Shown here: piece by piece, positions 5,400-58,064 of the stretch | How positions within the stretch are numbered: the first letter of the stretch is position 1 | Layout of the letters: each line of letters opens with the position of its first letter | Source of the DNA: Macrostomum hystrix | Taxonomy: Eukaryota; Animalia; Platyhelminthes | Assembly: GCA_950097015.1 (NCBI GenBank) | Contig: CATNEN010000034.1 | Location: 620,001-684,000 of the forward strand | DNA: 64,000 bases | Direction of reading: 5' to 3' | Position numbers and translations under genes: made by a program | The notes under the pieces: generated by a model | The model's input: the letters and a program-made list of their open reading frames with translations, nothing else | Database searches by the model: none | Told to the model about the DNA's origin: nothing

Positions 5400-8394
<2,995 letters not shown>

Positions 8395-19092: not shown

Positions 19093-21525
19093 CGGCGCTG
19101 CCGCCTCACAGCGCTGCCGCGGCGGCATTCCTACGCCAGTGCTTCGCCGAGGCGGGCGGAATGGGATTCGGCAATGTCGCACCTGGCAGCGTGGGCGGCA
19201 TTGTCAGTGGCGGGTCCCAGGTGGTCGTCGGTGGATTCGTCGGCGCCGGCGCTGGGGGCATGAAAACGCAGCGTGAGTGCTCGCAACAGTTTTTTGTTTA
19301 TTTCCTTTTTAATTTTTTTCTTACAATTCGATGTTAAACAAGTTTATTGATAACAAATTCTCGAAAATGTTCGCACATTGCCATTCCGATGGTACAAAAG
19401 CTGATAAGACACAAGGTAGTTTGAGTTTGCCCGAGTATCTTTGTTGGGTTTGTATAAGCTTGCTCTGCATCGCATGTTTAGCGACTTTTAGCGTGTCATT
19501 TTTGCTCACTTTTATCATGGCTAACTATAATAATTGCGGGATCTTTCGGGGCAAAGACAATAGAATCCTAGTTGCGCAATTTTTAGTGACTCCTGTCGGT
19601 CCCAAACACCCAATGCTGGAGGGTTGATTTTTTCACCTTCTCACATTGCTACATGCTCACAGTTTTCAACGTTGATGGGACCCCCCTTAATTTCAGTTAA
19701 TTTTCGAGCCCAATGCTCATGCAATTAGTCTTTTTTTAGCTTCCGACATTGCTAGCGGGGAGTAAAACAAATCTATATTTTAATTTATGAGTGGCTACAC
19801 AAGCGATCCTGCGAATGCCCCGAAGGGCTCTGTCGTTTGCTTATAAAAAAGCACAACTCGCGGATAGGCGTGCTTGTTGTTTCAAGCTCATTCGATCGAG
19901 TCAACGAGAGCTGCGCTTTTTTTGTTATAACACAGACACACGCTAAATAGGGGGTCCCGTGTTCCATCTGTCTCTTAGTAATATAGTAACCAGCTTTATA
20001 ATTATTATCAAAACTAAACATTTATAGAGTTTAAAGACAGCTAGATGAGTTCACTGATAAAAATCTTCGGTGAGTCGGCAGTGTCGTGCCAGTTCGCTGA
20101 GTTGATTTTCTAGGCAGTCTTCAGGGATACCAACTAACGACCTGGGAGAGAAAAAAGAAACAGAAAAAGCGTCACCGTTCTGAGTAGGCTGATTTCCTGG
20201 AAAAGCAGAGGCTTCCCCACAATGATTTTTGATCATTGGCAAACCCGATCGATTGAGCAAGCTGAAGGAAGGGGGCGTGGCCCTTTTTAACAAGGAGGAG
20301 CTGTCAGAAAGATTTGTTATGTTAAATCAAAATCACCACCAGCAATTAAGGTATTACAAACTTTTCACTTGGACTCAGGAGAGTCGAGCTCCGCCCACAC
20401 CTACTCAAACATTCTCTAATCTCATCGACTCAAACTCTTCGTTTCAATAGGCTAGATTTTAATCAAACAGAGCTTCAGTTTGACTCCGAAAGGTATAAAA
20501 TCAAAGCCCTAAATAATACAGAACAATCCTTGCCAAATATTTTCGCAACAGGCCAGCAACAGCAGCAGCAGCAGCACCTACAGCAGGCCTCCATTGCCGC
20601 AGGTTTTCGTCCGACTGGCCAGGCAGGAAAATCTCGCCGAGCAGCAACAGCAGCTGCGAACGCGTCCACCGCTGCCGACGCACACGAAGCTGACGACCTA
20701 GCCGCCGATGGAGCAGCCGGAGTGTCCAGCTGCTCAGATCCAGCCATCGTCAGCGCCGACCCAGCCACCACCGGCATGGGCGTCGGCCAAGACGACGAAT
20801 ATGACAACGATGAAGATGCCGCGGCCGCCATGATGGATGACGACGTCGACATGGACGACGAAGACGACGACGGCAGCGGTGCAGGCGGCGGCCTTGACGA
20901 CTCGAAAGACGAAGACACCGACGGTCGGGACGGTTCAGCGCCGTCCGGACTCGGCTCGTTGAAGCGCAAGAAGAAGACTAGGACGGTGTTCTCTCGCTCG
21001 CAGGTGTTCCAGCTGGAGTCGACCTTCGACATGAAGCGCTACCTGTCCAGCTCGGAGCGGGCCGGCCTGGCCCACGCGTTGCAGCTCACCGAGACCCAGG
21101 TGAAAATCTGGTTCCAGAATCGGCGCAACAAATGGAAGCGGCAGTTGGCGGCGGAAATCGAAGCTGCCAATCTGGCCGCCGCCAATCTGGTGGCCGCCAA
21201 CCGCATGGTCCGCGTGCCCATCCTCTACCACGACCAGAAGGCGCCAAGTCCCAGCGGCTCGGATGCCGAGTCAACAGCTGGCAGCAACGGAAATGCCGGC
21301 TCAGGCGGCGGCAACGCTGGTGGCAACGGTGGCAACGGTGGCAGCGGCGGCGTCAGCACCGGGAACGGCGGCGGCAACAATGACAGCGCCACTTCAGCGA
21401 CTAAGACGGCGGCGTTCGTCACTGCCGGTCAAGCTTTCTCCGGCGCCTTCCCGAATCCGCTTTACCTGACTGCGACGGGTTTCGGCTCGCCAATCAGGTC
21501 CGGCGGCCTCCCCGGCATGGTTTGA
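18489..21525 (+). CDS. Hmx: Hmx/NK5 homeobox transcription factor; exons 18489-19272, 20552-21525 (585 aa)
   Basis: Homeodomain [60 protein letters not shown] (20965-21144) is followed by the HMX-specific motifs LAAEIEAAN and VRVPILYH. An eh1 motif FSISSIL lies at 18654-18674. Donor GTGAGT at 19273 and acceptor AG at 20550-20551 are phase 1; total 1758 nt is in frame. Confidence 0.95.
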
Positions 21526-37904: not shown

Positions 37905-38832
37905 AATATAACAATAGTAGTAATAGTAAGGCTAAAAATTTACTTCAAATCAAGTCATATTCGATATTGAAGCATATTGTGATATTGTTAGGCATATAAA
38001 AAAACACGTTTCTTTACTCTTTCTAGGGCAGCTGTTAAGTTTTCTCTGTACTTTGCTAGCTTTCCTGTTAGCTCTGTAAAGGCTTTTGTCTTCTGCTGTG
38101 AGACTACGAAAGTTCTTTACGATGAATGAAATGTCTCCAACGAAATTTTCTCTGTTTTCATAAGTGGTTTTCGGGCGAACAGAACGCATCGTTTCGCAGG
38201 CCAGTCTGTGATTTCCAAAATGAAAATTTGACAGTATGCGCCTGTCTTCCGGGTTCGAAACATTTGATAGATATTTTTCACGGCAGAAATCTCGTGAAAC
38301 TGCAGTAGAAATGGCTGAGTTTGGCAGAACTTTGCATCCTCTGTCTCCAGTGTTCTAGGAAATCGCATTGAAATTTTCGCTGGAAATAAGCTTTGATATA
38401 ATGTATGGAGTCTTGGCGATGAGATAGAGATGACCAGAACTGGAAGCTTCTTTTCTGTATATCCTACAATAGAGGTAGTGTACCTAGTTCTGATCGGGCC
38501 CCATTGCTGTCAGTCAGTATATTTTGACTGAGTTGTAGTATTGCCTTGCAGTTCCTAAAGTTAATTCTCTTTATTAAGCCTAGATCTCAGGGTCCTAAGT
38601 TCCAGGAAACAAAGGTTCCCCAGGCCTCTGAGGCATATAGAACTATGCTTTCTACGAGTATCATGGCTGTACAGAACACGTTAGCTGCTTAAATTTGACT
38701 GTTCGAAATACTGACAAATTCCTAACAAACATTATTTAGTATAGCCACACTTTTTGCTAACTTCAATTGCGTGGGTATCGACTGCCCCTTCGAGTTCATG
38801 TGAAATCCTAGGTACTTTACTGAGCTCGTACT
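37905..38832 (-). mobile_element. Decayed 5'-truncated non-LTR retrotransposon ORF2 3' end (RTEX-like)
   Basis: Minus-strand translation with stops and frameshifts: SVKYLG...SIVLYASEAWG...ARSELGTLPLL*DIQKRSFQFWSSL...DFLEHWRQRMQSSAKL...EKYLSNV...RRILSNFHFGNHRLACET. This is the post-RT/C-terminal signature of RTEX/L2-like LINEs. Clade assignment is from recall. Confidence 0.75.
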
Positions 38833-40446
38833 CAAAATACGAAAATTTTATAATCAAGCAAAGGTTGTAAAATGAATTACGATTATTTGAGGATGAAAAA
38901 CAGTATAATTAAAATATAATTTTGAAATTTCTAAACGCAAGGAAAAGGTCACGAAATATATATTAAATATCGAAATAATCGAATCATAGTATTACCATTT
39001 ATTCTGAGCCGTCAAATTTCCTTTTCAGATTTTACTTTAGAGTAAAAAGGTAGGATGTTGATACCAAGGAATACTAAAATAGATCCTAACTATGCAAACC
39101 ATTAGCATAAATAATTTCAGATTAAGTTATGAATCACTATATGCTAAACTAAACTAACTACTAGAGAAACTTGATACTTGCACCTTTAGCGATGGAATTA
39201 TTAAGGCTTTTGCGTTAAATGCACTGCACACTAACGAAAGCAAAGTAAATCGTTTTAAGATTTCAAACACAAGGCTATTTTAGCTCTATGCACGGTAAAT
39301 TTTAAAGGCAAACGCTGGAAAAAGATAGTTATCTAAGGATAAATTTCATAAAAATGAAATCATTTTGATATTTATTCCAAATTAGTTTACTTTCTCAGAA
39401 TTAATTATCGTGCCGTAAATTGAAGCATATCTGTCTTCTCTGTCTATTACATTTCTATAGAACGCAAGTACGTACAAAATGTGATCTTCTGATTTATGAA
39501 TAATAAAATGAATCAGAAATATTTCTTTAGCAATCTAAAAATATTAAAAAACAACCACTAAAACATGTAATTTTAATTGCTTTTGTTATTTAAAAAAACC
39601 TGCTGAAAAACCAGCACTATATAGTGTTTTGCTCTTTTATACAACTTTGATTTGTGATTACGTAACTTAATGGAACTAATAAACTTAGCTGAATCAACTC
39701 AAAACTTTTTAAATACATATATATAATATTTTAGACTGTGATGTGCTTTCAATAAGTTTCATAATTTGAAAGATCAAAGTTTGAAAGCAAGAAAAAATTA
39801 TCACAAAATTTTACATGGTTATAGTTTTTGATTATTCAAAAAAGTACAAAACAGCCAAAAAAGTTACTATAACTGTTGGTTGATTTTTTAAACTAGCCTT
39901 TTTATAGATTACTCTTTCTTAAAGCTATATTTTAAAATAGTTATTTTGTATTATGAAACAATAGGATATTTAAACTTTGGACAAACTCTACATGTATAAA
40001 TAAAATTAGCTATGTGCAGAACAGAACTTTACAAATCTAAATAAAAATGTTGTTTTGCACATTAACATTTCTTGATTTTAAGAGTCAAACATTTTATATA
40101 TATGGATAAAGTGTCTATATAAGCGCTGGAGATTGTTTGCAAATATTAAAAAGGGCACAATATAAGAAGCAAAATAATTCGAAAAACTAACTAAAGTATG
40201 GAGAATTAAAAATAATTTTTTGTTCTATTTCTTGCAAAAAAGTTGTCGCAATAGCTCGTATATCATTGGCTATAGTGTCTTGACAGATTAAATATAATTT
40301 CTTTTAACAGAAAGTGTCAAAGATATCAAGTAGTGAAAATAAAAAAAAGTCTGCTTAAAAATAGCTTTACAAATTCTAATGACCATGGATATTGCCTAGT
40401 TCCTTAAATTCAAACTGCAGCTCTTTGAGTCAGTCTACAAAAGAAG

Positions 40447-43400
40447 ATGGAGAATGGGGTGCCAGTGCAGACATTCAGCAGCAATGATTACAAGCCGCAG
40501 TACCAGGGTGTGTTCTCTGAGAACAAGTCCAGCGACTTCCTGCTCAAAGTGCTCTTCATTCTGGCTCTGTTCCTGGCCCTTCTTTTCCTAACCGCCTGGT
40601 ATATAACTCGAAAGAATGTCCGCGTTCCCATGGCAACAGTGTGTCGAGTTACTCCAACTAGCCTTATGCTGCGTGAATACCTAATGCAGTTCACCGATCC
40701 CTTCGTGCTGGTAGAATTCAATAAGCGACGCGACTGGCTGTTCGTCATTAGCCAGGCCGATGTGATCTACAGTTCCGCTTTCACCTCCAAGCTGATCTAT
40801 GCCAGGCCACACCTTGCTTTCGGTGAGAGGCAATGAGACTGACTGGCTTGGGGATGTGTGAGACTGGCTTGGGGATGTGTGAGACTGGCTTGGGGATGTG
40901 TGAGACTGGCTTGGTAATTTGTGAGACTGGCTTGGGGATGTGTGAGACTGGCTTGGTAATTTGTGAGACTGGCTTGGTAATTTGTGAGACTGGCTTGGTA
41001 ATTTGTGAGACTGGCTTGGTAATTTGTGAGACTGGCTTGGGGATGTGTGAGACTGGCTTGGGGAAGTGTGAGACTGCAATTGATATAAGCATTCGAACGA
41101 GGACATTTGAATGCTTCTGTAACCAGGTATCTGGGCCCATTATAAGTTCTCCCACGAACCCACCAGACGACTGGAAGGCCACCACGGTGTACTCGCTGAA
41201 TTACGAGGAGGTGCGCGTTGTCAGCCTGCTATCCAGATTCTCCGTTGATGACCTGCTGCATTCCCATGCACTGATGGGTGACTGCGTCGACGACGCTCTG
41301 GCCGGCTTGGGCGAACGGCTACGCGGCGACGGCGAGGATCGAAACGGCGAGACCGACGCCGTTATCGACGAGGCGACAGTGATAGGCATTGTTCGCGCTT
41401 ACATTCTGGACGCGGTGTTCGGCTGGGCCGACCTCTGCGACGATTTGCAGCCGCAGTTGGACAGCATCCTGGACAAGTACCTGGCCTTCTTCCGCTCCGC
41501 CCACCTGCTTAACCCCAACTGCGATGGACCTCGCATGCACCGTCTGCAGGAGGACCTGCACGGAGAGATCCGGGTTAGTAGGGCTTGATTTTTAACCTTG
41601 ATTTTTAAGCTCACTCCGTTCACCTCTGCTAAACTTTACCCCACCTGTCTTCTCTGCTAAACTCTACCCCACCTGTCTCCTCTGCTAAACTCTACCCCAC
41701 CTGTCTTCTCTGCTAAACTCTACCCCACCTGTCTTCTCTGCTAAACTCTACCCCACCTGTCTTCTCTGCTAAACTCTACCCCACCTGTCTCTGCTAAACT
41801 CTACCCCACCTGTCTCCTCTGCTAAACTCTACCCCACCTGTCTTCTCTGCTAAACTCTACCCCACCTGTCTCCTCTGCTAAACTCTACCCCACCTGTCTT
41901 CTCTGCTAAACTCTACCCCACCTGTCTCTGCTAAACTCTACCCCACCTGTCTCCTCTGCTAAACTCTACCCCACCTGTCTCCTCTGCTAAACTCTACCCC
42001 ACCTGTCTTCTCTGCTAAACTCTACCCCACCTGTCTTCTCTGCTAAACTCTACCCCACCTGTCTTCTCTGCTAAACTCTACCCCACCTGTCTTCTCTGCT
42101 AAACTCTACCCCACCTGTCTCTGCTAAACTCTACCCCACCTGTCTCCTCTGCTAAACTCTACCCCACCTGTCTTCTCTGCTAAACTCTACCCCACCTGTC
42201 TCTGCTAAACTCTACCCCACCATTCTTTGCTAAACTCTACTACACCTGTCTCCTCTGCTAAACTCTACCCCACCTGTCTCCTCTGCTAAACTCTACCCCA
42301 TATGTCTTCTGTGCTAAACTCTACCCCACCTGTCTTCTCTGTTAAACTCTACCCCACCTGTCTCTGCTAAACTCTACCCCACCATTCTTTGCTAAACTCT
42401 ACCACACCTGTCTCCTCTGCTATACTCTACCCCTCCTGTCTCCTCTGCTAGACTCTACCCCACCTTTCTCTACTAAACTCTACCCCACCTGTCTCCTCTC
42501 CCAGAATCTCTACCCCACCTTTCCATCTCTCTATAACCGATGTTTGTCATTATTTGCGTTTTATTTCAACTTGCTAATTAACCTCGATTATTCGGCAGGA
42601 CTTTCTGGACCACTTCATGAGCGACACGCACAACAACCTGGTCGACCGGCCAGTCGCCAGCTTCGTTGAGCGCTTCATCAAAGAGAAGATGTCATTCGAC
42701 CAGTGCGGCATCACCGACACGGACTTTATCACGGCTAATCACATGCTGCAGGAGGCTCTGGACTTTGCCAGCCTGGTTCTGGCCATTGTGCCCGACCTTG
42801 TTTACGCCACGCTGAAGCGCGTGGCGGCTGCGCCGGACGAGTTTTTTGCGGCTGTCAACGTGGCCGACAATGACAGCGTGGAGGCCGCGCTGGAGGAGGT
42901 CTGGGAGGGGGGACCAACGAGTAATTTTTATATGCGAGCTCTAGAAATCTGACTGATTGGTCGTGAGTTCGAATCCCAGCTTGAGAAATTCACTTAATTC
43001 CCAGGTGATTCAGTTCACCCTGTTGTAAAATGGGTATCAGCATCAACTGCAATGGATATAGTTGGGTGGGTGTGGCTGCCAAGTCCATTTACAATTCCAG
43101 GGTGTTGGTTTAAGTATAAGCACCTAACGAGTACATGTCAATAAGATAAGCAAACTAGTCGGATGTACATTGGGGGAGAGAGTGAAAGGAGTGAGTGTGG
43201 CTCGCCAGCCAATAGCAAGAGAGAGGGGGGATTTCAATTGAAATTGACCGGAAGTCCTTTAAATAAACGATTAGGAAATGAAGTGTAGTCACAATCGACA
43301 TCAATGTCTCGCTCTCCCAAACAAACTCCAATTCCCAAATTACAGGCCAATAATAGATGATTTATCGATGAAAATAATCCAAGGTTATCCAAAATTCCAA

Positions 43401-43920
43401 TCAAGATCGAAATCGATCCATGAAATCCTTAATTCCATTTGTGGCAGGTGAAACTTGTCGAGATCCAGACAATCCAAAAATCCCAGCCGCAGAATTTAAT
43501 AATCGAACTCTTTCCAAGGTGATTCGCGTCGAGGACATCGGCAGCGACACGGTGGTGTTCCTCAGCACAGCCGAGTTGGTGTGCGCCGGCTGCCTCCTAC
43601 CAATGGGCTCCTGCGTGGCCGTGAATCTGCACGCTGTGAACCGCGATCAGCTGACCTTTCATTCGTCCGGTCAGCTGGTGTGGGACCGGTTCGCCAGGCC
43701 GGGCCAGCAGCAGCAGCCGGGTGATGCTGGCGCCGCCTCTCCGCTGCAGGCCGCCCACGCCAAGTCGCCTTTCTACCGATTCGCCCTGTCGTTGGCCTCA
43801 GCCATGGTTCAGGGAGTACTGCTCAGATACCAGCTGAGGCCGGGTAAAAATGCGGCCCGAATTGCCTACAATGCCAGGCCGGAGGAAGAGACGGATAAAA
43901 CTATTAGTTGTGAGGCCTGA
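40447..43920 (+). CDS. Cytochrome P450-fold protein lacking the axial Cys; exons 40447-40822, 41167-41573, 42599-42898, 43519-43920 (494 aa)
   Basis: N-terminal TM anchor [23 protein letters not shown]-helix VEAALEE|VIR gives ExxR across the exon 3/4 junction. [18 protein letters not shown] resembles IPKGT.V.VN.WAVHRD, and WDRF occupies the PERF position. The Cys-pocket region reads [15 protein letters not shown]. Splice phases are consistent (1,0,0) and the total is 1485 nt. The exon 3/4 junction has alternatives (see findings). Confidence 0.8.
40835..41076. repeat. 21-bp minisatellite (gagactggcttggggatgtgt), P450 intron 1
   Basis: ~11 copies, starting 12 nt after the donor. Confidence 0.95.
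41623..42520. repeat. 28/25-bp minisatellite (ctctgctaaactctaccccacctgtctt), P450 intron 2
   Basis: ~32 copies. Confidence 0.95.
42945..43090 (+). mobile_element. Diverged SINE fragment in P450 intron 3
   Basis: B box gagttcgaatccc, CORE remnant cacttaa...cagttcaccctgttgtaaaatgggta, and gggtgtggc...gtccat as in the other copies. Confidence 0.6.
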
Positions 43921-44790
43921 ATTCTAAAAAAAACAGTTTTTTTGTTATGCTACTGTCAGTAGAGTGAAGGCATGATAACATTCACTTCTTTGTTCACCGT
44001 AGTTAAATAGCCCGCATTGTCAAGCCAAGCTGCTGCCTGCGATTCCGTTATAAAATTGTCCTTAGCTTTTTGCCTAGTCACTTCCATGTCGTTATGTGTG
44101 TAATTTCTTACTGTTATTTGTTATTTTACACGAATTTAAGTTGTTTTCATTGCTCGCGTTTCTTTAATATTTATCAAATAATGTTATTAGCTCGATTTGA
44201 CTAAATCCTAGCCTAGCTAACCTCAGTATAAATATTTACTTTGTTACTTGGGTATATTTGTTTGTTTGTTGTCTAGCGTTTATCCAGCTTTTAGACATAG
44301 TTTGTGTCGACTGCGCGTTAGATCGCCAGTCATTCAGTTTCGTTTTTCACTTTTTTCACTTTACGTTTTCATGCATGAGTGTTCACTTGTAAAAGCTTGC
44401 TTTTTGTGTCATGCTTCATTTTAAGCATCTATCTAGTCTTGCTGGTTATCAACTGTAGCTTTGAAGTGCATGCTAGTCAAATTAATTATTCTTTTTTTTT
44501 ATTGTGCAATGTTTTTTTAATATAAGCGTGGTAAAAATAAAAGTATCATTTTTATTATACACCTGAGTGCTCTAAAATGGATCGACTTTAAACTGGCTTT
44601 TGTTTTTTCTTTAGTTGAATAATATAAGTAAATTTGTTTATCTGCATTGAAAGAACTGCTCCAGCCATTTCTGCATGGTGACATTACTTAACGACAAGCT
44701 TAAGAACGCGCTACCGGGCTAAAACAGGGAATATCAATGGGAGAACCGGGCCTCATCCCTCCGTATAACTACCCCATCTCTGATGATATT

Positions 44791-45109
44791 AAGGGGATTG
44801 TAGACTAGTGGGTTAGAGTGTTGGACTTACGACTTGAAGGTCGGGGGTTCGATTCCCGACTCCACTGGAACAATTTATGTTCTTTAGCAAGACACTTAAC
44901 TCTGCATTGCTTCAGTTCACTCAGCTATTAAATTGGTAGCAGCATTAGCTGGGTAATTAGCTGCGTAATTGAGTGTGGGTGTGGCGTCCCCCCAGTCCAT
45001 GGACTGAATAGCCGTACGCAGCCTTCAGATGCGCCGCACAATAGCTGCGGCTGTGCTGTCGGCTGCACATCTGGGCTGATTAGTGCAGGTGTAATCAATT
45101 AAACTATTT
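44791..45109 (+). mobile_element. Full-length CORE-type SINE with 12-bp TSD
   Basis: tRNA head, CORE and 3' region colinear with the 10467 copy. Direct repeat TCTGATGATATT at 44779-44790 and 45110-45121. Confidence 0.85.
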
Positions 45110-45994
45110 TCTGATGATATTGGTAGCGTGAAGTGGGTGAATTAGACACTTAAGGAAAGCAAAAAAGTCTTCCAAAAAGGAGGGGGTTGGGTGAAATTTG
45201 ACAAGCATAAAACCCCAAAAATATAATTTATTTTATTTTATTATTTTCTTTTTTTCCGGGACGGAGGGGGTTTGAAAGTTCAAGTTCCTGCAGGTGTTTC
45301 CTCCTGCAGCGAGAGGAAAGTGATATGAGAAGAGCAAGTAAGAATCCTAAAAAGTTATACCCGTTAAGGTCGCGGTTACTTCATTTTCTTGAGAATCTAG
45401 AGATAATCTAGAGATATCTAGAATCTAGAATCTAGAGATATCTGGATAATCTAGAAAATTTATGTGAAATTTTAGGACGCAGAACAAATGCACGAGAAAC
45501 AGAGCTACAAGTCTATATTTTTCGTTTTTCAAATATTCATGTTTACTTTTTCAGTAAAATTGTCAAGTCATGAGTGATCTCACTGCACGCAGCACAATTC
45601 GAAATACTGCACTTGCGTAACGAGCATTAATCAAAGAAAAAGTAAAATGTGGAGCAAAATTTTTGATCGGCCATATAAACGAGTAGATAAAAAAGTTTTT
45701 TTAATATGAATCTTAATCTTGTTTGCAGCCTTCAAATGTGGCAAGGTTTTTCGGGTTTGATTTAACTCACTAAAAATAGTATAAATTGACGTGTCGCGGA
45801 CCGCTTCTCACGGGCGCCAAATTAATTTTTGTTGTTTGCTCCCAGAAGTTAACACTCTATTTTAGGAAATGCATTGTGTCTTCTTATATATTGTAATTAG
45901 TTAGCATTTTTGTTAATATCAGTGAATTATAAGACAATATGATTGAAATTATCGATTGTAATAATGTAATTAGAAATTGTCTACAATTAATATA

Positions 45995-48900
45995 ATGTCT
46001 GTAAATATGAGACGTAGCATAAAACCACATGGAGGTGAGTAGTATATTACGCAAACAATCCGTTTTTTCATAAACACCCTAACTTTCTAGACTTTTAAAA
46101 AACATAACAGAATGTATGTCTGAATGCTGAACTGACAAATTTTAACATAAATTTAATGGTGTATACTTAATTATTTTAAGATCGCTATCTATACTGGGTT
46201 TTAAAACCTAGCCTCCTAGTCCTAGCAAGGCCTAGCTATAGCATAGCCATATGCCCACTCTTGGCTTTACAAAAGAATTAACTAAAATCCCATACCCTTC
46301 CAGTTTTTTTAGTTGCAAATGTGTAATGTTCTTCATTAGTTCCAAAAAGAATTTAAATTATTATTTTTATGTAATAGCAAAATAATTTTTTTCATTTCAT
46401 AATTTTTGTTGCATAATAATTTTAATATTAACAACATAACTAACTATTATAATTATATATGCTTTTAGAATGATAGTTAAATAAATTAGAGGACAAGAAA
46501 AACTAAAACTTTAAGAAAAACAAGAGGCTACAAAAACATTCTCCATAGTATTTATATTTTCTACTACTAATAGTATTTTTAAGCAAAATTCTAGTAATAT
46601 TTTAAAGCTAAACTATTTAATAAATTACAATCAAATCAGATTAATAAAACTAACAACTAACAGCTAAGGCATCAAGTATAGTCTCAGTATCACAAACTAT
46701 GGCTAGGCTTAGAAATCATAAAAATTTTGTATACTAACATACAGTTCTTTTTCTCCTTACTTGAAATTGACTAGTATATTTTTTCTGAGAACTCCAAAGA
46801 GGCCTATATTTAGTTAAGTATAAAACAGAAATTGAAATAGCTTAGATTATGATAAATATAACAATTAATTTTTCAACATTTTAAACTTTTTATACAGTCT
46901 TGGCTTAAATCTTTAATCTTGGCTTGGCTCAAAACTTTAATCCCTCATAGTATAGCAAGACTTGCTTATGAGGGTCATAGTCAATTACAACTGGCCATAT
47001 ATGCAATAGTTAATGGGGTAGTATTGTTGTAGCCTAGACATGTCATTGCCATTATAGGGGTCCAGATGTATACAAGCATGTAAAAATGATTAACTAATAT
47101 TTATATATTTTTTAATATTATTAAGCAAAATGATATTCTAAAGCAAATAATAGTCTGGTTAGTGCATTTTTTGAAAGCTTAAAGTTTTTAATGCAAAAAA
47201 TTACCACTTAACTGTGTACTAAACTTTACTAAAATAGCTATAAGCTATATCCCTTAAAATTAATTTATGTAGCATAAATTCATATTTAAATCTAAACATT
47301 TCAATATGCCAGATCTGACCACATTTCAACTATTAAACCAAGTTTGTAAGCTAAAACTATTTTGTGTTTATATAATTTCTTATGTTTATGTGAGTGACCA
47401 ATTTAGTTTTTTTCTGTAGTTCTTAAAATTAGATTTCATTGTCGAAAACTCCATCAAGTCACTGTATGAATAGCTTTTATTTACTAAACAAAGTCGAGTT
47501 GTTAATGGGTATAGCTAAGATGGTAAAAAGACCTATGTATCTAATCAACTAGACTTTAGAACTTATTTTTTTAAAGTATAAAATGCTTAGTACCTTGTTA
47601 GCCATGTTGGCCAAAATGTGTCCTCTTTTTTATATTATTCAAATCTAGATAAAAAGTGATATAGCTCAAATGTTGATCATTTCTAATGTCAAACTAATGT
47701 TTTTTTTCAAAACATTAGGTGGCTCCAGCGGGGGCAGCTTTCACGCACTTGGCAACAAAAGTACCACAGTTGGAGGAGCTGGCACAGCAGCTGCCACTGG
47801 CGCCGCAGTTTCGCATTCGCCGCTTGGTGGCGTTGGTGTCGCCGTTGCCATGCCTTTGCCGGCACAGCCTATGCCGACGCCGACGCCTCATCTGACTGGT
47901 CAGCGTCGCCCAGGTGTGAAAGAAGCTGGCTTCGAAGCCAACGCCTGGCCAATAGATCCAACCAATCTGGTCCGCTCCGTTGAAGAGCTGGAATCCCGAG
48001 GCAATTCGGAGGGTCGCACCCAAGCCGAGATGCACCTGTGCGGTGCTTTAGTCCAGCTGAGATCTTGCAAGGCCCGCCTACCGCCAATCCTGGCTGTCAG
48101 TCTGGCCTACCTGGCCAAGTCCAGGCCGGCCAGTTTCACCCGGCCCTCAGTGTTTGAAGGCCTCTGCTCGTTTCTGCGCAAACGCGATCAAGTGTCCCGG
48201 CCGGCTGCCATGCTCTGCGTTGGCCTGCTGTCCGCTGCGCTGCGCGATCTGGATGCCTGGCCGGAGCCCATTCTTAGAGCCTACGTTGAGGATTCAATAG
48301 GCGAGCGCTACTGGGTTGACCGCAGCGACTGTCGCTGGATTGTGCGCAATCTTGAAGCCTCGTTTCCTAATACTACGCCGGCTGATGCCCTGTTCGCCTT
48401 TGGCAATCGTTCTCGACTGGATCAGGTTGCACTTCCTGGCGCCGCTTCAGTTGGCGCGGCCGCCAGCGATGAAGACTCTGCGCAAAGCGGCAGCGGCTTC
48501 CTGGACGGCCAGGCTCAGCAGCAGCCGCCGATTCTGCCGCGCTACGCCAAGAAGCCGCCCTGGCTGGAGGAGCTGGTCGTCTGCTGCGTTAAAGACGCGC
48601 TCCAGAAACGCGGCCAGGCCACTTCTAGCGAGGCCGGCCAGAGAGCGGTCATCCGGCTCATGACTGTGGCTTCCGGCTATTCAGAGATTCGACTCATGGC
48701 TGCCAGCAGGCTGGAGATGTGGCTGCAGCTGGCCAAATTGCAGGTTAGTAGAGAACTCTCTTATGCTAAAAGTCAATTTAAATTTATCTATTTTGTTGAT
48801 CTATTGATCTGTTGATTCTATTGACATGATTCAAATTAATTCTGTTGATCTAGTTGATAATTATGTTGATCTGATTGATAATTACGAGTATATTGATCTG

Positions 48901-51900
48901 ATTGAAAATTATTTTGATCTGATTGAAAATTATTTTGATCTGATTGATAATTGTGTTGATCTGATTGATAATTATGCTGATCTGATTGATAATTATGCTG
49001 ATCTGATTGATAATTATGTTCATCTGATTGATAATTATGTTCATCTGATTGATAATTCTTTTGATCTGATTGATAATTGTGCTGATCTGATAGATGATTC
49101 TTTTGATCTGATTGATAATTATGTTGATCTGATTTATAATTATCTTGATCTGATTGATAATTATGTTCATCTGATTGATAATTCTTTTGATCTGATTGAT
49201 AATTGTGCTGATCTGATAGATGATTCTTTTGATCTGATTGATAATTATGTTGATCTGATTGATAATTATCTTGATCTGATTGATAATTATGTTCATCTGA
49301 TTGATAATTCTTTTGATCTGATTGATAATTGTGCTGATCTGATAGATGATTATTTTGTTCTGATTGATAATTATGTTGATCTGATTGATAATTATCTTGA
49401 TCTGATTGATAATTATGTTGATCTGATTGATAATTCTATCGATCTGATTGATAGTTATGCTGTTTTTATTGATAATTCTATCGATCTGATTGATAGTTAT
49501 GCTGATTTTATTGATAATTCTATCGATCTGATTGCTGGTATACACCGATCCGATTCGGCACAAATCCGCAGGCGGAGGCCATGGACCTGCTCACAGCTGT
49601 GTGCTGCAACTGCTCAGCATTGGCCGGCTCGCGCGACTGCGATGTTGTCGCCCGCCTGGTTGACAAGCTGCGCTTCAAATCGCACAAGACAGTGTTTGCC
49701 CACTATCTGCACTGCCTGAAACTGTTGGCATCTAAGCACGCTGACAACCTGCGTGCCATCTTAGCCACTGTTGTATCTAACGAGCTCAGCTCCGGTGTTC
49801 GCAATCCAAACAATGCGGCTGTACTGGCCGCTCTGCACAGCCACACTCCGAAGGAGGCCTGCCGTGCCCTGGCCGCTATATTCAGAGACCTACTAGTCCA
49901 GGACACCGGTCGGCACCAGCTCCGTTGTTTGCTGCGCGATCTCTATCGACATTTGAAGGCCGATCTGAGCCTGCCAGCTTTTGCTAAAGCTCTACTGTTG
50001 CCGCCTGACTCGCGAGTTGCTTCCCTGCCTGTGGAGCATAGGAGACAGTGAGTTTATGCCAGTATCTTGTTCCCTATGAGGTTCGGGGCTATTGGTAGAT
50101 TTTAAACATTAACTCGATCTCCATAATACAGATACGCTGAGAGCCAGCTGGACCTGCTCTGTGTCTGCCAGATGGTCAGCGCCGCCCAACCCTCAGTGCG
50201 CGAAGCCGTAGCCCGACGCCGCGATGTCGGCGAGCCGCCCGCCCTGACACGCCACTACGCCACCGTGGCAAAGCTTCATCGCCTTGCCCTGCACTGGCTA
50301 GCTGTAGGCCTGCCACACCTCCTGCCTAGAGACCAGCTGCCGCCGCCTCTGCTTGGCCTGTTCTCCAGGCGAGCCTGCTTTCTGCCCGTGCCGGATCCCG
50401 CACCGCCGGAGACGCCGCCAGCTAGTTGGGATCATCCTGCTGATCATTGGCCGCCGGAGCAGGACCGTCAGCTGGTGCTGCGATTGTGCTCCGAGGTACC
50501 GCTGCACAGCGAGACTATAGCCTCCGCCCTCCGGCTCGGTTTCGACGGCTTGCTCCAGCCGACATTCGATGCACTTAATTTAGCCTCCGAGCTGGTGTTC
50601 CGCTCAGCTGCTGCCCTGCTAGGCCCCGACGCCTGTCCTGCTCCGGCCGGCCCGGACGTTGCCCAGCGGCTGTTTGACGCGTGCGCCTATCGACCGTCGG
50701 ATGAACGGCTGCCGACCGCTGCGGGGCTGGCCGCATCCAATCCTTCAGGCTTTGCCGCCGCGCAAGCCTATTGGTCGGCTTCGCTAGCTTTGGTCTTCTT
50801 GGCTGCATTTAATCCTACTACGGTTGGGCGACTCGTTTGGGACAAGTGAGTTTTTTTGTTTTTTACTTTTTTGGTTTGTTGTGCATCTTTAAAGTCGGTT
50901 TCAGGTTCCTGGAATTATTTAGGAATCCTTAAAGTTGGGGTCAGACGACTTTTAAGTAGTTTTTAGTTACCTGAAGTTATTTTTGGGATAATGATACGGT
51001 TTCAGATGCCTGAAGTTATTTTGGGGGTAATGAATTCAGTTTCAGATGCCTGAAGTTATTTTGGGGGTAATGAATTCGGTTTCAGATGCCTGAAGTTATT
51101 TTGGGGGTAATGAATTCGGTTTCAGATGCCTGAAGTTATTTTGGGGGTAATGAATTCGGTTTCAGATGCCTGAAGTTATTTTGGGGGTAATAAATGGGGG
51201 TAAAAAATACGGTTTCAGATGCCTGAAGTTATTTTTGGGTGTAATGAATTCGGTTTCAGATGCCTGAAGTTATTTTTGGGGTAATAAATACGGTTTCAGA
51301 TGCCTGAAGTTATTTTTGGGGTAATAAATACGGTTTCAGATGCCTGAAGTTATTTTGGGGGTAATAAATATGGTTTCAGATACCTTAAGTTATTTTGGGT
51401 GTAATGAATTCGGTTTCAGATGCCTGAAATTATTTTGGGGGTAATAAATACGGTTTCAGATGCCTGAAGTTATTTTGTGGGTAATAAATACGGTTTCAGA
51501 TGCCTGAAGTTATTTTGGGGGTAATAAATACGGTTTCAGATACCTTAAGTTATTTTGGGTGTAATGAATTCGGTTTCAGATGCCTGAAATTATTTTTGGG
51601 TGTAATGAATTCGGTTTCAGATGCCTGAAATTATTTTTAGGTGTAATGAATTCGGTTTCAGATGCCTGAAATTATTTTTGGGTCTAATGAATTCGGTTTC
51701 AGATGCCTGAAATTATTTTGGGTGTAATGAATTCGGTTTCAGATGCCTGAACTTATTTTGGGTGTAATGAATTCGGTTTCAGATGCCTGAAGTTATTTTG
51801 GGTGTAATAAATACGGTTTCAGATGCCTGAAGTTATTTTGGGTGTAATGAATTCGGTTTCAGATGCCTGAAGTTATTTTGGGTGTAATGACGGTTTCAGA

Positions 51901-54900
51901 TGCCTGAAGTTATTTTTGGGTGTAATGAATTCGGTTTCAGATGCCTGAAGTTATTTTTGGGGTAATAAATACGGTTTCAGATGCCTGAAGTTATTTTGTG
52001 GGTAATAAATACGGTTTCAGATGCCTGAAGTTATTTTGTGGGTAATAAATACGGTTTCAGATGCCTGAAGTTATTTTGGGGGTAATAAATACGGTTTCAG
52101 ATACCTTAAGTTATTTTGGGTGTAATGAATTCGGTTTCAGATGCCTGAAAATATTTTTGTGTCTAATGAATTCGGTTTCAGATGCCTGAAGTTATTTTGG
52201 GTGTAATGAATTCGGTTTCAGATGCCTGAAATTATTTTTGGGTGTAATGAATTCGGTTTCAGATGCCTGAAGTTATTTTGGGTGTAATGAATTCGGTTTC
52301 AGATGCCTGAAGTTATTTTTGGGTGTAATGAATTCGGTTTCAGATGCCTGAAGTTATTTTGGGTGTAATGAATTCGGTTTCAGATGCCTGAAGTTATTTT
52401 GGATGTAATGAATTCGGTTTCAGGTGCCTGAAGTTATTTTGGGTGTAATGAATTTGGTTTCAGATGCCTGAAGTTATTTTTGGGTGTAATGAATTCGGTT
52501 TCAGATGCCTGAAGTTATTTTTGGGTGTAATGAATTCGGTTTCAGATGCCTGAAGTTATTTTTGGGTGTAATGACGGTTTCAGATGCCTGAAGTTATTTT
52601 TGGGTGTAATGAATTCGGTTTCAGATGCCTGAAGTTATTTTTGGGTGTAATGAATTCGGTTTCAGATGCCTGAAGTTATTTTTGGGTGTAATGAATTCGG
52701 TTTCAGATGCCTGAAGTTATTTTTGGGTGTAATGACGGTTTCAGATGCCTGAAGTTATTTTTGGGTGTAATGAATTCGGTTTCAGATGCCTGGAGTTATT
52801 TTTGGGTGTAATGAATTCGGTTTCAGATGCCTGGAGTTATTTTTGGGTGTAATGAATTCGTTTTCAGATGCCTGAAGTTATTAAAAACCTTTTATAACCT
52901 TCAGGTACCCAACTGTTCGCTGCCTGCTGGAGATGGTCATGACCTGCATGTACGAGTTCCCCTGCCAGTCCCTGCTCCATCGTGAGGGCCTCAGCTCCGA
53001 TGCTGTTCGAATGCGCGAACTGAGAGCTTCGGAAGCGGAGAAAACTCGAGTAGTGAGGCTGGAGATGCAGCTGGCTGGTACGGACATTACCGAGGCCAAC
53101 TCCCGCCTGCTGGGCTGGCTCATGGACAGCGCACCCTGCGGCCCGCCTAGGCAGCCGCCGGGTTGGGCCATTGCCCAGTTGCGCACACTCAACACTCAGT
53201 ATGGCATAGGGCTGCGATTGTGCCGCTCTCGGAATCCGGACTTCCTGTTGGATCTCATACAGGTGAGGCAGACTATAAACTACTCAATTCTTTTAACAGC
53301 GGAAAGATGCGTGTAGCCATTACAAATGCCCACATTTATATTTTTTTTGTCTCCCAAAAATAATGAACCAATCGCCATGAAAATCCAAAAGAATCACAAA
53401 CATGCATCACAAAGATGCATCGAGACAGTCACTGAAGCATCGAGACAGTCACTGAAGCATCGATACAGTCACTGAAGCATCGAGACAGTCACTGAAGCAT
53501 CGAGACAGTCACTGAAGCATCGATACAGTCACTGAAGCATCGAGACAGTCACTGATGCATCGAGACAGTCACTGAAGCATCGAGACAGTCACTGAAGCAT
53601 CGAGACAGTCACTGAAGCATCGAGACAGTCACTGATGCATCGAGACAGTCACTGAAGCATCGAGACAGTCACTGAAGCATCGAGACAGTCACTGAAGCAT
53701 CGAGACAGTCACTGATGCATCGAGACAGTCACTGAAGCATCGAGACAGTCACTGAAGCATCGAGACAGTCACTGAAGCATCGAGACAGTCACTGAAGCAT
53801 CGAGACAGTCACTGACGCATCGAGACAGTCACTGAAGCATCGAGACAGTCACTGAAGCATCGAGACAGTCACTGAAGCATCGAGATGTTCAACTATTCTT
53901 TTCGGGGTGTCATTGTAAACCAAAATTGAATCGCCATTCGATTATTCCGAGCAATGTTAGCTGTACTTGCCACCAGGGTGGTCTTTGACAAGAATCGCTG
54001 AATATCTTGACGATGCTGACGTCGGACGCGAAGTCGGCAGTGGATATTTGAAATACCCTCGTGTTCTTTCCCCAGGAAGCTAAATATCGTGGTATTCCGA
54101 TTCCATTTCAATAGAGATGAATTTCCTACTCACTATTCACAGTAGCATATATTGCTCTCATTCGCAGGTGTTCAGCCGCGCCGGCGCCAGTCAGCAGTGG
54201 CTAGTGCGTCTAGTTGACAACCTTGGCAATCAGAGCCTGTCAATCTTGCCAGTTCAGTGCCTAGCCGAGATTCTATTGGCCCACGTTGGGCACAACACCG
54301 AGCGGCGTCAGCAGCTGCTGGCCAGGCTCACCGCTCTAGTCAACAGTCCGGGCGACTCTGCCGACGACGATCTGATGGATGTGCGCCAACTGCTGGCTTA
54401 CTTCATGGCCCGACTGCGCGCCAGATCGGCTTGCATTCGCACCACCGCCGCCGACTGTCTGGCGCTCATTCTGGCGCCGACTAATTCTGGCCCTGATGAT
54501 AGCACGCCGAACAGTCACTGGCTTCTGGAGCGGCTGCCGGGACTGCCGCTTTTTCCCAGACTGCTGGCCTTCCTAGCCGGCCAGCTCGTCGAATGCCTGG
54601 CCGAGGAGACCTGTCCACGCGCACTGGGCGCCTACATTGCCTTCCTGACGCGTCATCTGCTCGACAGTCGGCTAGCTGGCGACGTTGACAACAAGCTCGG
54701 CCGAGCCTACCTGGACAACCTGGCCAGGCTGGTGCTGCGACGGCCGCTCACCGTCAGCCGGCTGGCCGCCTCGCATCGAGCCGCCGCTCTGCTGGCTTTG
54801 CGCGCTTTCGCAGTCAGCTTAGACCGACCGACACTGCTAAGCATTGAAGCGGTGGCTGGCGATGATGCCGACGCTGACGGCTCGCCTCTGATGGTCCGTC

Positions 54901-57900
54901 TGGCTGGGCACAAAGGCGAGCAGCCGACTGCCGTGTCACCTCGCCTGCTGCTTAGCCACCTGCTGATGCTGTCACTGGACCTGGGCCCTGAGGCTGAGCA
55001 GCATCGAGCTCGCCTTATCTCCGCATGGCTGAAGCCCGACGGCAGCTTGGCCGACGGCTGCGACAGCCTGTCAATGCCGGAGCCGGTGCTGGTCCGCCTG
55101 GCTCGCAGTCCGGACAGGCGCCTGGCCACTCTAGCCGCGTCCCGCACTGGCGCGCCCCTGCTAGTCCGCCTTCTGGCTAACGTCAGCGAGGCCTGGCCTG
55201 CTGGCTCCGTGTCCGCAGTGCTGGCAAGGCTGGAACAGCTAGTCGGCCAGCTAGGCGATCCAGCCAAGTGGGCCGTCGGCCACGCCACTCCGGTGCCCTG
55301 GTTGCGACTGCTGCATTGCGCCAGACGGCTTGGCCTCGGCGACAACGAGCCCGGCGTTCGGCTGCTGGCAAAACTAGCCGATGGCAACGAAGCCATGCAA
55401 GTCGACGGAGAAGTTCAATGCGACAGCGTCGAGCAATCGACTGGATGTCGACTGTTCGGAGGCGGCCAGACGGCTTCAATTGGCGGTGGGGTGCCCGATC
55501 GTCATCGCGTTGATGGTGCGGCCTCATCTGATGTCAAGCCCGAGGAGCTGGTTAAACTGCTCGGCGAAGGCCGTCGCGGTCGCAGTCGGCTTCGTCGTTT
55601 TCTGCATCGCGTTAGCTCCGATTCCGCTTTTGCCTCGGCCTGTCGCGAGCTGCTCCGTGAGCGGCTGTTAAAGGCGTCACCAACTTCATCGGCTGCCTTC
55701 GCCGACTCCCTAGCTAGGCAGCAGTGGCTGGCCGGCCCGCTGTTCGCCAAGCTGTTCCCGCCGCACAGTGTTGCCCTCGCCGACTCGACTAGTAGTCGCC
55801 TAGCCAAGGACATCGCCAATCGCCTGCCAGCTGGCAGTGCGGCCCGACGGACTCTCCTTAGCCTGCTGCCGCCCAAAGCGCCAGCGTCAACTTTGGCGAA
55901 GCTTCCTTCGATTGTTGATCCGTCCATGCAGTCCTTGGACGACCTTCGTCGAGCTTGTCTGACCAGCTCTGGCCACGGCAGCGGTGGCGAAATTGTCAAC
56001 GGAGCCGCCCTGGACTACCTCTGCCTGGCTGACCCAGCCTTCCCGCCGGCTAGCGAAGTCTTTCAACAGCGAAGAGTATCTCATCAGCGCGACGAGTTCT
56101 CGGCTGCCGATGCTGGCGCCAGTCGCTACCTGGCCGCCCTGCTGCTTCACCGCTCCGACCTGGCCGACCTGCCTCGGACCGTTCGCCAAGTCCTGGCTGA
56201 CGATGCCAGCTTCGGCTCAGTTGACCCCGGCCTCCTGTTAGACACATACCAAGCCTGCCAGCGACATCCGAAACTGCTCCTGCCCGGCGACCACGGAAGC
56301 AAGGCGTTGACGCAGACGCCGCCAATGCGAGCTACAACGGCTGAGGTACTCCGATTGGCTCAGCTGGCAGTTCGCGAGGCCGACAGCAACGCCTCCGGGC
56401 GCCTCCTGGACAGTCGGGCCGATCTAATCTGCGCCCAATTGTCCGATGAGTCCGCCGTAGAACATGTCGACATTGCGTCGCTGCTCTATTCAGGATCAGC
56501 TTCGGCGCTGGACGGTGGAACCGCCGACGACCGGCGCGTCAGTGCGCGCGCTCTGATTCACTGGCTCAGAACAGCGGGCAAGACCTCCGCCGGCGCGCGC
56601 CGTCTCCGTCTGGCTCTCTACTGCCGCCTGCCCATGCTGGGACCACCGCCGTCACCGTCGCTAGAGTCTGACTTCGAAGTCGAGGAGGCGCAGCTGCAGC
56701 CTGGAGATCCTGTGCTGGCGTACGGTCACCGTGTGCTGGCTGGCATGGCGAGCCACTGCGAGTCCGCTCAGTCCATCAGCGCCACCGCCTGTCGAGTCCT
56801 GGCGGCCAGGCATCCCCGCCTGCTGGTTCCAATGCTGCCCGCTGCGGCAGCCCTGCTTAGCGGCCGCTGCCTACTGCCGTTCGCTGAGTTTCGCTGGCAG
56901 GGACCGATGGCAATGTTTGTCTATTTGGTCCAGGTGTGTACTCATTCAGTACTCCATTGAGTTTTCTCTAAGACGTCAACCTATAGGATGACACCTAATC
57001 TGTTAGTTTAGAAAACGACACTTCAATCTAGAAAATCTAGCAGTACACTGTCCTAAAAATCATACTTAGAACTTCTACTAACCCAATTGCAGGTCCTGGA
57101 GCACCTGGGTCCCGGCCTCTACCTGTCCGACTCAGTTAGGCCCGCTGTGGACGCCATCCTTACAAGCTACGCCCGGGCCCTCCACCGCTACCGTGACAAC
57201 GCCAGAAACATTGTCATTCAACTGGGCGCCAAGCTCACCCAGCTGCTCCGCGCCTATGCGACCGCGTCGCCTGCGCCAGCTCGCCGACTGCTCGTCCGAC
57301 TGCGGCCGCTGCTGGCCTCGCTGCCGTCCGATCTGACCGACTCGCTGCCCGACTTGGCTGCTCTGCTAGCCGGCGTCGCCGAATCGGGCGAGGTCAGCTC
57401 CGTTTGCGCCGCCGCATCTGTCCCGTCTTCCGTCGCCGCCGGCCGACTAGCTCCGTCAACTGTGGCCGCCTACCGGAAGCGGCTGCGCCAGCTCGACAGC
57501 CTGGCCGACCTGACCGACGCTCTGCGCGAACTAGACGACAAAAGCCGTCGCCGGCCAGACCAATTGGACAATTTTATTGGCGACATTGAGTGCCTATTAG
57601 GCGTGGCCTGTCCAGAGATTCGAGCCCCCGCCCTAGCCCTGCTGCTTCGCCAGGCTCGGCTGGACTCTCCAGTCGACAGCGGCGTCGGCGACTCTTTTGA
57701 TCCTGCGCTGCGCCTGCTGCAGCCGGGCGCCGAGCCGGGAGCCCAGGCCCAGCTGCTCGCCTGCCTACCCGAATTGGCCTCCGTATGGCCCGAACGGGCG
57801 CCCATCCTGCTGACCGCCGTTGCCCGTCTGGCCGCCGGCGGGGTGCCCGACGCTACCAGAGCCTACGGCGCCGCCCTTGACCAGCTGAATCTGGAATCGC

Positions 57901-58064
57901 TGCTGCCCGGAGCTGTTGTCGCCACTGATGCCGCAGCGGACGCGCCAGCTAGTTCAGCAACCGCTGAATCAGTCGACGATTCATCAGCCACCACCGCCGC
58001 CGCCGCCGCCGCCGCTGCTATTTCTGCCGCGGCTTTAGATGCTACTGTGAAAGCAGAAGTCTGA
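45995..58064 (+). CDS. INTS1: Integrator complex subunit 1; exons 45995-46034, 47719-48743, 49572-50047, 50132-50845, 52905-53262, 54168-56933, 57093-58064 (2116 aa)
   Basis: Recalled INTS1 motifs: GSFHALGNK, LCGALVQL, SLAYLAK, WPEPILRAYVEDSIGERYWVD, RLEMWLQ, NELSSGVRNPNN, YPTVRCLLEMVMT, SRNPDFLLDLIQ, LPVQCLAEILL, RHPRLLV. All six introns are GT-AG with matching phases; 6351 nt = 2117 codons. Exon 1 (MSVNMRRSIKPHG, donor GTGAGT at 46035) is the least certain. Confidence 0.9.
48845..49533. repeat. 21-bp minisatellite (tgatctgattgataattatgt), INTS1 intron 2
   Basis: ~33 copies, degenerate from ~48795. Confidence 0.95.
50970..52882. repeat. ~40-bp minisatellite (ttcggtttcagatgcctgaagttattttgggtgtaatgaa), INTS1 intron 4
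   Basis: ~45-50 copies with length variants. Confidence 0.97.
53415..53885. repeat. 20-bp minisatellite (gcatcgagacagtcactgaa), INTS1 intron 5
   Basis: ~23 copies. Confidence 0.97.

Follow-up and report, generated by a model that had tools for sequence, protein, structure and literature searches.

The flatworm Macrostomum hystrix carries a strongly conserved, apparently expressed gene whose product is a cytochrome P450 homologue with serine in place of the heme-ligating cysteine. This gene occupies positions 40447-43920 (+) of the window, the whole stretch of 64,000 nucleotides analysed here, and its four exons encode a product of 494 amino acids. The axial cysteine has long been treated as the one invariant residue of P450s, and its position is taken here by Ser444, whose codon TCG (43765..43767, +) is found in the window sequence, in assembled contigs from public runs and in the orthologous gene of Macrostomum lignano. 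Given the pattern of residues kept and lost, our leading interpretation is that the protein is probably an ER-anchored, heme-free pseudoenzyme built on the P450 fold, serving as a binder or a regulator.

When GT/AG combinations were enumerated around the four long plus-strand open reading frames, the 494-residue frame was the only open model with strong splice sites, recovering the full-length gene put forward in a preliminary description of this DNA. Exon 1 (40447..40822, +; codons 1-125 plus one base) is 86% identical to the M. lignano protein. It begins with an N-terminal tail of about 30 amino acids, followed by the transmembrane anchor that the same description had recognized (22 residues encoded at about 40537-40602, residues about 31-52; AF2 places a helix at 29-55 with a pLDDT of about 85) and then by the basic stretch TRKNVR. 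Exon 2 (41167..41573, +; codons 126-261) contains the C-helix region with a conserved Arg149. The junction between these two exons (40822/41167) was defined by reading frame and orthologue only: the acceptor at 41167 is the sole one that keeps the frame open with the donor at 40823, and the resulting AF/DDW joint agrees with the M. lignano protein P0001 (...HLAF/DDWK...). Exon 3 (42599..42898, +; codons 262-361) encodes the remnant of the I helix and the J helix, its last residue being Glu361 of the ExxR motif, and exon 4 (43519..43920, +; codons 362-494 plus the stop) supplies K-helix Arg364, the beta1-4/beta2 region, the meander, the former heme loop, the L helix and the C terminus. Introns 1 and 2 are largely tandem repeat, with 11 copies of a 21-bp unit at 40841..41076 in the former and about 33 copies of a 28-bp unit (137-bp higher-order) at 41624..42520, filling most of the latter; the introns of the M. 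lignano orthologue are similar in size (434, 1197 and 890 nt).

The locus is present in four public runs. Contigs from three of them (X2, X3 and X4, all of one study) were placed on 42545-44100, a segment clear of the intronic repeats. In X3 and X4, contigs join 42896/8 to 43517/9 at GT..AG borders, removing the 620 nt of intron 3 (42899..43518, +), which is retained in X2. A loose end before 42598 in the contigs marks the end of exon 2, and the exon 2/3 and 3/4 junctions are thereby both seen in spliced contigs. The layout of one contig, 1742 nt long, fits the entire mRNA and includes about 46 nt of 5' UTR. Because the contigs are spliced, RNA is the likely source of the runs, and the gene is apparently expressed; a processed DNA copy, rather than RNA, is formally still a conceivable origin of these contigs. 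Across the three runs, the contigs contain no letters other than TCG at the Ser codon. Within the exons, the one difference is T>C at 43905, the third position of codon 490, which, together with small indels at 43932-43936 just past the stop, separates X2 and X3 from the window and X4; these differences are probably allelic variants.

The relationship of the protein to P450s is, by sequence comparison, real but remote and weak. P0001, with 81% full-length identity to the window protein, scored 23.7 bits on PF00067 (E 2.4e-5; cut-off 22.8), aligning residues 219-430 to profile positions 158-390. All 67 matches at E<=10 in a phmmer search of all PDB chains were P450s, in register on the K helix, beta1-4/beta2 and meander, and a profile version of the search gave the same picture. 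Language-model features from the ESM-Atlas also placed P450s in 40 of the 40 nearest clusters. For alignment we assembled a comparison set of 120 prokaryotic loci, fetched with a degenerate DNA pattern for PFGxGxRxCxGxxLA, from which 80 complete P450 open reading frames were obtained; as that pattern governed the retrieval, the loop columns of the comparison set are bound to be invariant. An HMM of the 80 bacterial P450s matched the window protein at 313-426 and P0001 at 300-431, and hhalign aligned 216 columns from the E helix to PERF (E 6e-5, probability 64%). The homology signal ends exactly at the heme loop.

Structure prediction was in keeping with these matches. With only the window exons as its alignment, P0001 was modelled by AF2 at a pLDDT of 34; with a P450-seeded alignment the pLDDT was 64 and the pTM 0.65, with values of 70-85 over most of the C-terminal half. 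In the seeded model, Ser449 (P0001 numbering) is directly followed by a long helix, just as Cys is followed by the L helix in P450s. When this model was compared with the PDB by Foldseek, the 50 matches listed were all P450s, among at least 500 with E<=0.001, the best being CYP3A5 (TM about 0.6), and a shape search of the Atlas returned P450s as 40 of 40 neighbours. Because the alignment had been seeded with P450s, the AF2 and Foldseek results represent consistency rather than independent proof.

Compared with microsomal P450s (PF00067), the flatworm protein has a similar length of about 490 amino acids and the same order of an N-terminal transmembrane helix followed by basic residues. It is alignable from the E helix through the meander, with the Glu-Arg-Arg triad, the C-helix Arg and the register of the L helix (FA at +5/+6, LL.Y.L) in place. 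It differs in lacking the axial Cys, the AGx(D/E)TT of the I helix, the beta1-4 Arg and the PP after ExxR, in having an FxxGxRxCxG signature reduced to its Pro, in carrying about 30 extra residues before the transmembrane helix and in a Pfam score that, for the orthologue, lies barely at the threshold.

The 15-residue former heme-ligand loop (residues 436-450; 43741..43785, +), the start of a 34-residue peptide encoded at 43741-43842 (+), was aligned to PFGxGxRxCxGxxFA. Three methods agreed in placing Ser444 on the axial Cys, bearing out the central claim of the preliminary description. These were a global hhalign comparison with the 80 bacterial P450s, in which a 16-residue segment lay on lPFGgGpRxCIGxxFA; a MAFFT alignment with 40 bacterial P450s, in which P441, S449 and A455 of P0001 fell on the P, C and A columns; and a phmmer search with exon 4 alone, which aligned KSP with KCP of PDB 3dbg. 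The register is also set by flanks that lie outside the selection pattern: PERF on the upstream side, FA and LL.Y.L on the downstream side. Of the loop consensus, Pro(-8), Phe(+5) and Ala(+6) alone are kept. Besides the change of Cys to Ser, Phe(-7) is replaced by Leu, Gly(-6) by Gln, Gly(-4) by Ala, Arg(-2) by Ala and Gly(+2) by Phe, so that the Gly and Arg residues of this loop are gone, in line with what had been claimed, and the signature FxxGxRxCxG with its Cys thiolate is absent from the 11 residues that now stand in its place. The former loop retains Lys(-1) and Ser(0) together with His(-3), the His441 pointed out in the earlier reading.

We looked for a cysteine-containing loop elsewhere at the locus. 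Downstream of residue 393, no Cys is conserved between the window protein and that of M. lignano. In the plus frames of 38000-47600 no peptide fits G...C.G, and the rest of the window lacks the two stricter motifs F..G...C.G and G.[RH].C.G, bar one low-complexity match on the minus strand. Scans around the gene for alternative exons, tRNAs and Rfam families were negative. It is very improbable that the resemblance to P450s is a chance motif, that the Ser is an assembly error or that an alternative exon supplies the Cys loop. What speaks for such readings is that the four exon peptides, searched singly against Pfam, gave no P450 match at E<=1 and that exon 4 alone reached an E of only about 0.8 against the PDB; all three are contradicted, the first by the consistent full-length evidence (Pfam, ESM, PDB, HMM and hhalign), the second by the TCG codon in both contigs and orthologue and the third by the motif scans.

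Over the protein as a whole, the residues that are kept are those that lock the fold; the residues that are lost are those that, in P450s, hold the propionates of the heme, lie against the heme or pass protons to bound O2. ExxR is present as E361-R364, spanning the exon 3/4 junction, and the PERF/meander motif as WDRF (416-419; 43681..43692, +), both as the first reading of the sequence had them. Arg418 of WDRF completes the Glu-Arg-Arg triad, and the columns of E361, R364 and R418 are E, R and R in all 40 bacterial P450s, with the PDB alignments in agreement. Arg149, in a column that is R in 39 of these 40, is retained in the C helix, where the Arg of canonical P450s contacts heme. By contrast, the oxygen-activation motif (A/G)Gx(D/E)T(T/S) of the I helix is absent: hmmsearch, hhalign and MAFFT all aligned (A/G)GxETT to TANHML (306-311; 42731..42748, +), with Gly, acid and Thr all replaced (T-A-N-H-M-L). 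The Pro after ExxR is replaced by Asp. The beta1-4 Arg, which anchors a heme propionate in canonical P450s and occupies a column that is R in 36 of the 40 bacterial sequences, is Phe375 (43558..43560, +).

To examine conservation, we analysed the orthologue and its gene. Searched exhaustively with HMMER, 1.84 billion representative proteins yielded a single match to exon 4, P0001, which is M. lignano PAA76028.1 (Mlig016456g1), annotated, like the other copies in that species, only as 'hypothetical protein'; a word-index search with the full orthologue returned its own cluster only. The window protein has no entry of its own in this collection, which, with a dS of about 1.1, points to a Macrostomum-type species other than M. 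lignano. Two more M. lignano gene copies fall in the 90% cluster of P0001, giving three in total. The M. lignano gene (contig NIVC01000847.1) has the same four exons with identical intron positions. Both distinct full-length proteins encoded by the three copies keep the 11-residue loop with its Ser, and the codon is again TCG in the copy examined as DNA, so the Ser is conserved in the second flatworm. By the Nei-Gojobori method, 480 aligned codons gave pN 0.099, pS 0.583, dN 0.107, dS 1.13 and dN/dS 0.095, the ratio being approximate because dS is close to saturation. All four exons had values between 0.05 and 0.13, and codons 440-470, which cover the former heme loop and the L helix, gave 0.052. 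Over the 17 codons 436-452 there are seven synonymous differences from M. lignano and two amino-acid changes, one of them within the loop, which is otherwise identical between the species (A/V). The contrast between pN and pS, as read from these sequences, is unambiguous and indicates a maintained gene rather than a recent pseudogene.

A P450 pseudogene, in decay or inactivated not long ago but still transcribed, would account for the loss of catalytic residues and for the retention of intron 3 in one run. This reading has very little chance of being right and is contradicted by the frame, intact in two species at a dS of about 1.1, by the dN/dS given above, by the identical intron positions and by the three intact M. 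lignano copies. The preliminary description had proposed a maintained Cys-less P450 homologue, either a pseudoenzyme or an alternatively ligated hemoprotein, and had listed what would overturn it. Each item proved otherwise: P450 matches were found with PF00067 (on the orthologue) and in the 67 PDB and 40 ESM comparisons; contigs and orthologue have Ser, not Cys; the motif scan revealed no last exon with a Cys loop; and a dN/dS near 1 without expression is at odds with the observed ratio and the spliced contigs. The proposal is thus supported.

Because the gene is spliced, apparently expressed and strongly conserved despite the loss of heme residues, its product probably has a job other than that of an oxygenase. 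The protein would descend from a microsomal-type cytochrome P450 and would have become incapable of heme-thiolate monooxygenase activity. Fixed in the ER membrane by its N-terminal signal-anchor helix, it would expose the P450-fold domain to the cytosol. With the Glu and Arg of ExxR, the Arg of PERF and the C-helix Arg kept to lock the fold, and with the heme-binding and O2-activating residues replaced, a heme-free pseudoenzyme with the P450 fold is the most likely outcome. Strong purifying selection may then reflect a non-redox role such as the binding of a hydrophobic ligand or, alternatively, the allosteric regulation or scaffolding of a partner protein of the ER, comparable to EryCII and its glycosyltransferase. 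Homology, substitutions, splicing, conservation and selection were observed directly in this analysis; ER topology, absence of heme and a role as binder or regulator are what we infer from them.

The main rival to heme loss is a natural non-thiolate hemoprotein that binds heme through Ser444 (as an alkoxide), His441 or Lys443 and works as a sensor, a heme carrier or an isomerase- or peroxidase-like catalyst. It keeps this standing because the remodelled loop is highly conserved and retains His, Lys and Ser, although we think it rather unlikely. The 11-residue loop is almost invariant at a near-saturated dS and belongs to the most conserved segments of the protein, so that its His(-3), Lys(-1) and Ser(0) could contact a cofactor; C-helix Arg149 is retained; and a bacterial precedent exists in P450-G9, a native Ser-ligated P450 with a solved structure (10.1101/2024.12.22.630014), whose chain 9cjg_A is among the weak PDB matches of the flatworm protein (E 0.43). 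Against these points, Ala and Phe stand in place of two of the three Arg residues that canonically anchor the propionates. Phe also replaces Gly(+2), the residue that allows the L helix close to the heme; Gly(-4), Gly(-6) and Phe(-7) have disappeared, and the heme-packing Gly of the I helix is Ala. We favour a pseudoenzyme over alternative ligation because nearly all heme-contact residues are lost, and the extent of this loss makes the absence of heme likely. In its boldest form, which we hold to be a shade less probable still, the rival would be the first animal non-thiolate P450 hemoprotein, ER-anchored, with its proximal pocket remodelled throughout and the heme bound via Ser444 (or His441/Lys443). 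If true, it would have chemistry or sensing unlike any characterized eukaryotic P450.

Several Cys and His residues are common to both species, including a cluster of Cys383, Cys386 and Cys393 near the former substrate site. A new, heme-independent catalysis on the P450 fold, for example through this cluster, would be in keeping with those residues and with purifying selection over the whole length; no catalytic motif is recognizable, however, and Pfam gave no family match besides P450, and we consider the idea improbable and purely speculative.

P450 homologues without the axial Cys are known from microbes, which justifies the caution on novelty voiced in the preliminary description: they have been published for bacteria (10.1101/2024.12.22.630014; PMC3391682) and oomycetes (PMC5919972). 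EryCII/DesVIII has a P450 fold without Cys and heme, proven by structure, and serves as the activating partner of a glycosyltransferase (PMC3391682). Such PDGAFs (EryCII-DesVIII-AknT) resemble the flatworm protein in being P450 homologues without the Cys ligand and offer a model for its possible mode of action. They differ from it in being bacterial and soluble, in being encoded beside a glycosyltransferase in antibiotic clusters and in having an extra A'' helix and no C helix, whereas the flatworm gene is that of an animal, has introns and has INTS1, homeobox and MBT genes as neighbours; we found no specific sequence relationship between the two.

A recent survey reported 301 PDGAFs and 880 ncCYPs in 20 bacterial families (A-T), with Ser at the axial position in ncCYP families G, R and T, and described P450-G9 (PDB 9CJG) as a bacterial protein with a native Ser-alkoxide-ligated heme (10.1101/2024.12.22.630014). 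What defines the ncCYPs of that survey (Nguy et al. 2024), a non-Cys residue aligned to the axial position, also holds for the flatworm protein with its Ser444. The 880 ncCYPs all come from bacteria, many of them from biosynthetic clusters, whereas the flatworm protein is membrane-anchored and from an animal. P450-G9, compared at the axial ligand, binds heme via its Ser; the flatworm protein, by contrast, lacks most other heme contacts.

Among eukaryotes, some oomycete proteins of CYP5619D have no CXG cysteine (PMC5919972). Like the flatworm protein, these members of the P450 family are eukaryotic, have a degenerate heme motif and lack the Cys, but they are domains of peroxidase/dioxygenase fusion proteins from an unrelated lineage. 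In animals, the paper on the Capitella CYPome states that exceptions to the invariant Cys exist and gives CYP20A1 an I helix reading AGFHTT together with the loop PFGFGKRKCLG, ESLR and FDPER (PMC4229089). CYP20A1, brought up for comparison by the preliminary description, is, like the flatworm gene, a single-copy orphan with an atypical I helix, and motif comparison puts His at the acid position in both Capitella AGFHTT and flatworm TANHML; unlike the flatworm protein, the Capitella protein has a canonical heme loop. A full-text literature search, with partial coverage of reviews, returned no report of a Cys-less P450 in an animal.

A Cys-less, membrane-anchored P450 homologue in an animal would extend a microbial phenomenon to Metazoa. 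Genes of this kind will escape standard CYPome surveys, which screen by Pfam score or by the Cys motif. RNAi, in situ hybridisation and transgenesis are established in the model flatworm M. lignano, which also has the gene, so that its function could be tested there.

The P450-like gene is solitary, with no other P450 within the 64-kb window, and its neighbours are Integrator subunit 1 (INTS1), homeobox and MBT-repeat genes. INTS1 lies immediately downstream as a multi-exon gene (47670-58064, +) whose open reading frames carry the RP2B-binding, INTS2-binding, R3 and R4 domains. A homeodomain frame lies at 20530-21525 (+; E 1.5e-21) and an MBT-repeat frame at 6398-7234 (+; E 7e-29).

Two short segments near the gene resemble sequences found elsewhere. 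Within intron 3, about 65 nt at 43161-43227 match other contigs of the same runs with 5-6 mismatches, one of them a contig of 995 nt from run X3 with a depth of about 296 and unrelated flanks. This segment, present once in the window, probably belongs to a dispersed repeat or an abundant transcript. A weak Rfam match to the tRNA clan (tmRNA model; 14 bits, E 0.017) lies at 44794-44867 (+), downstream of the gene by about 900 nt; ARAGORN called no tRNA at this position, and the segment may be the head of a tRNA-derived SINE.
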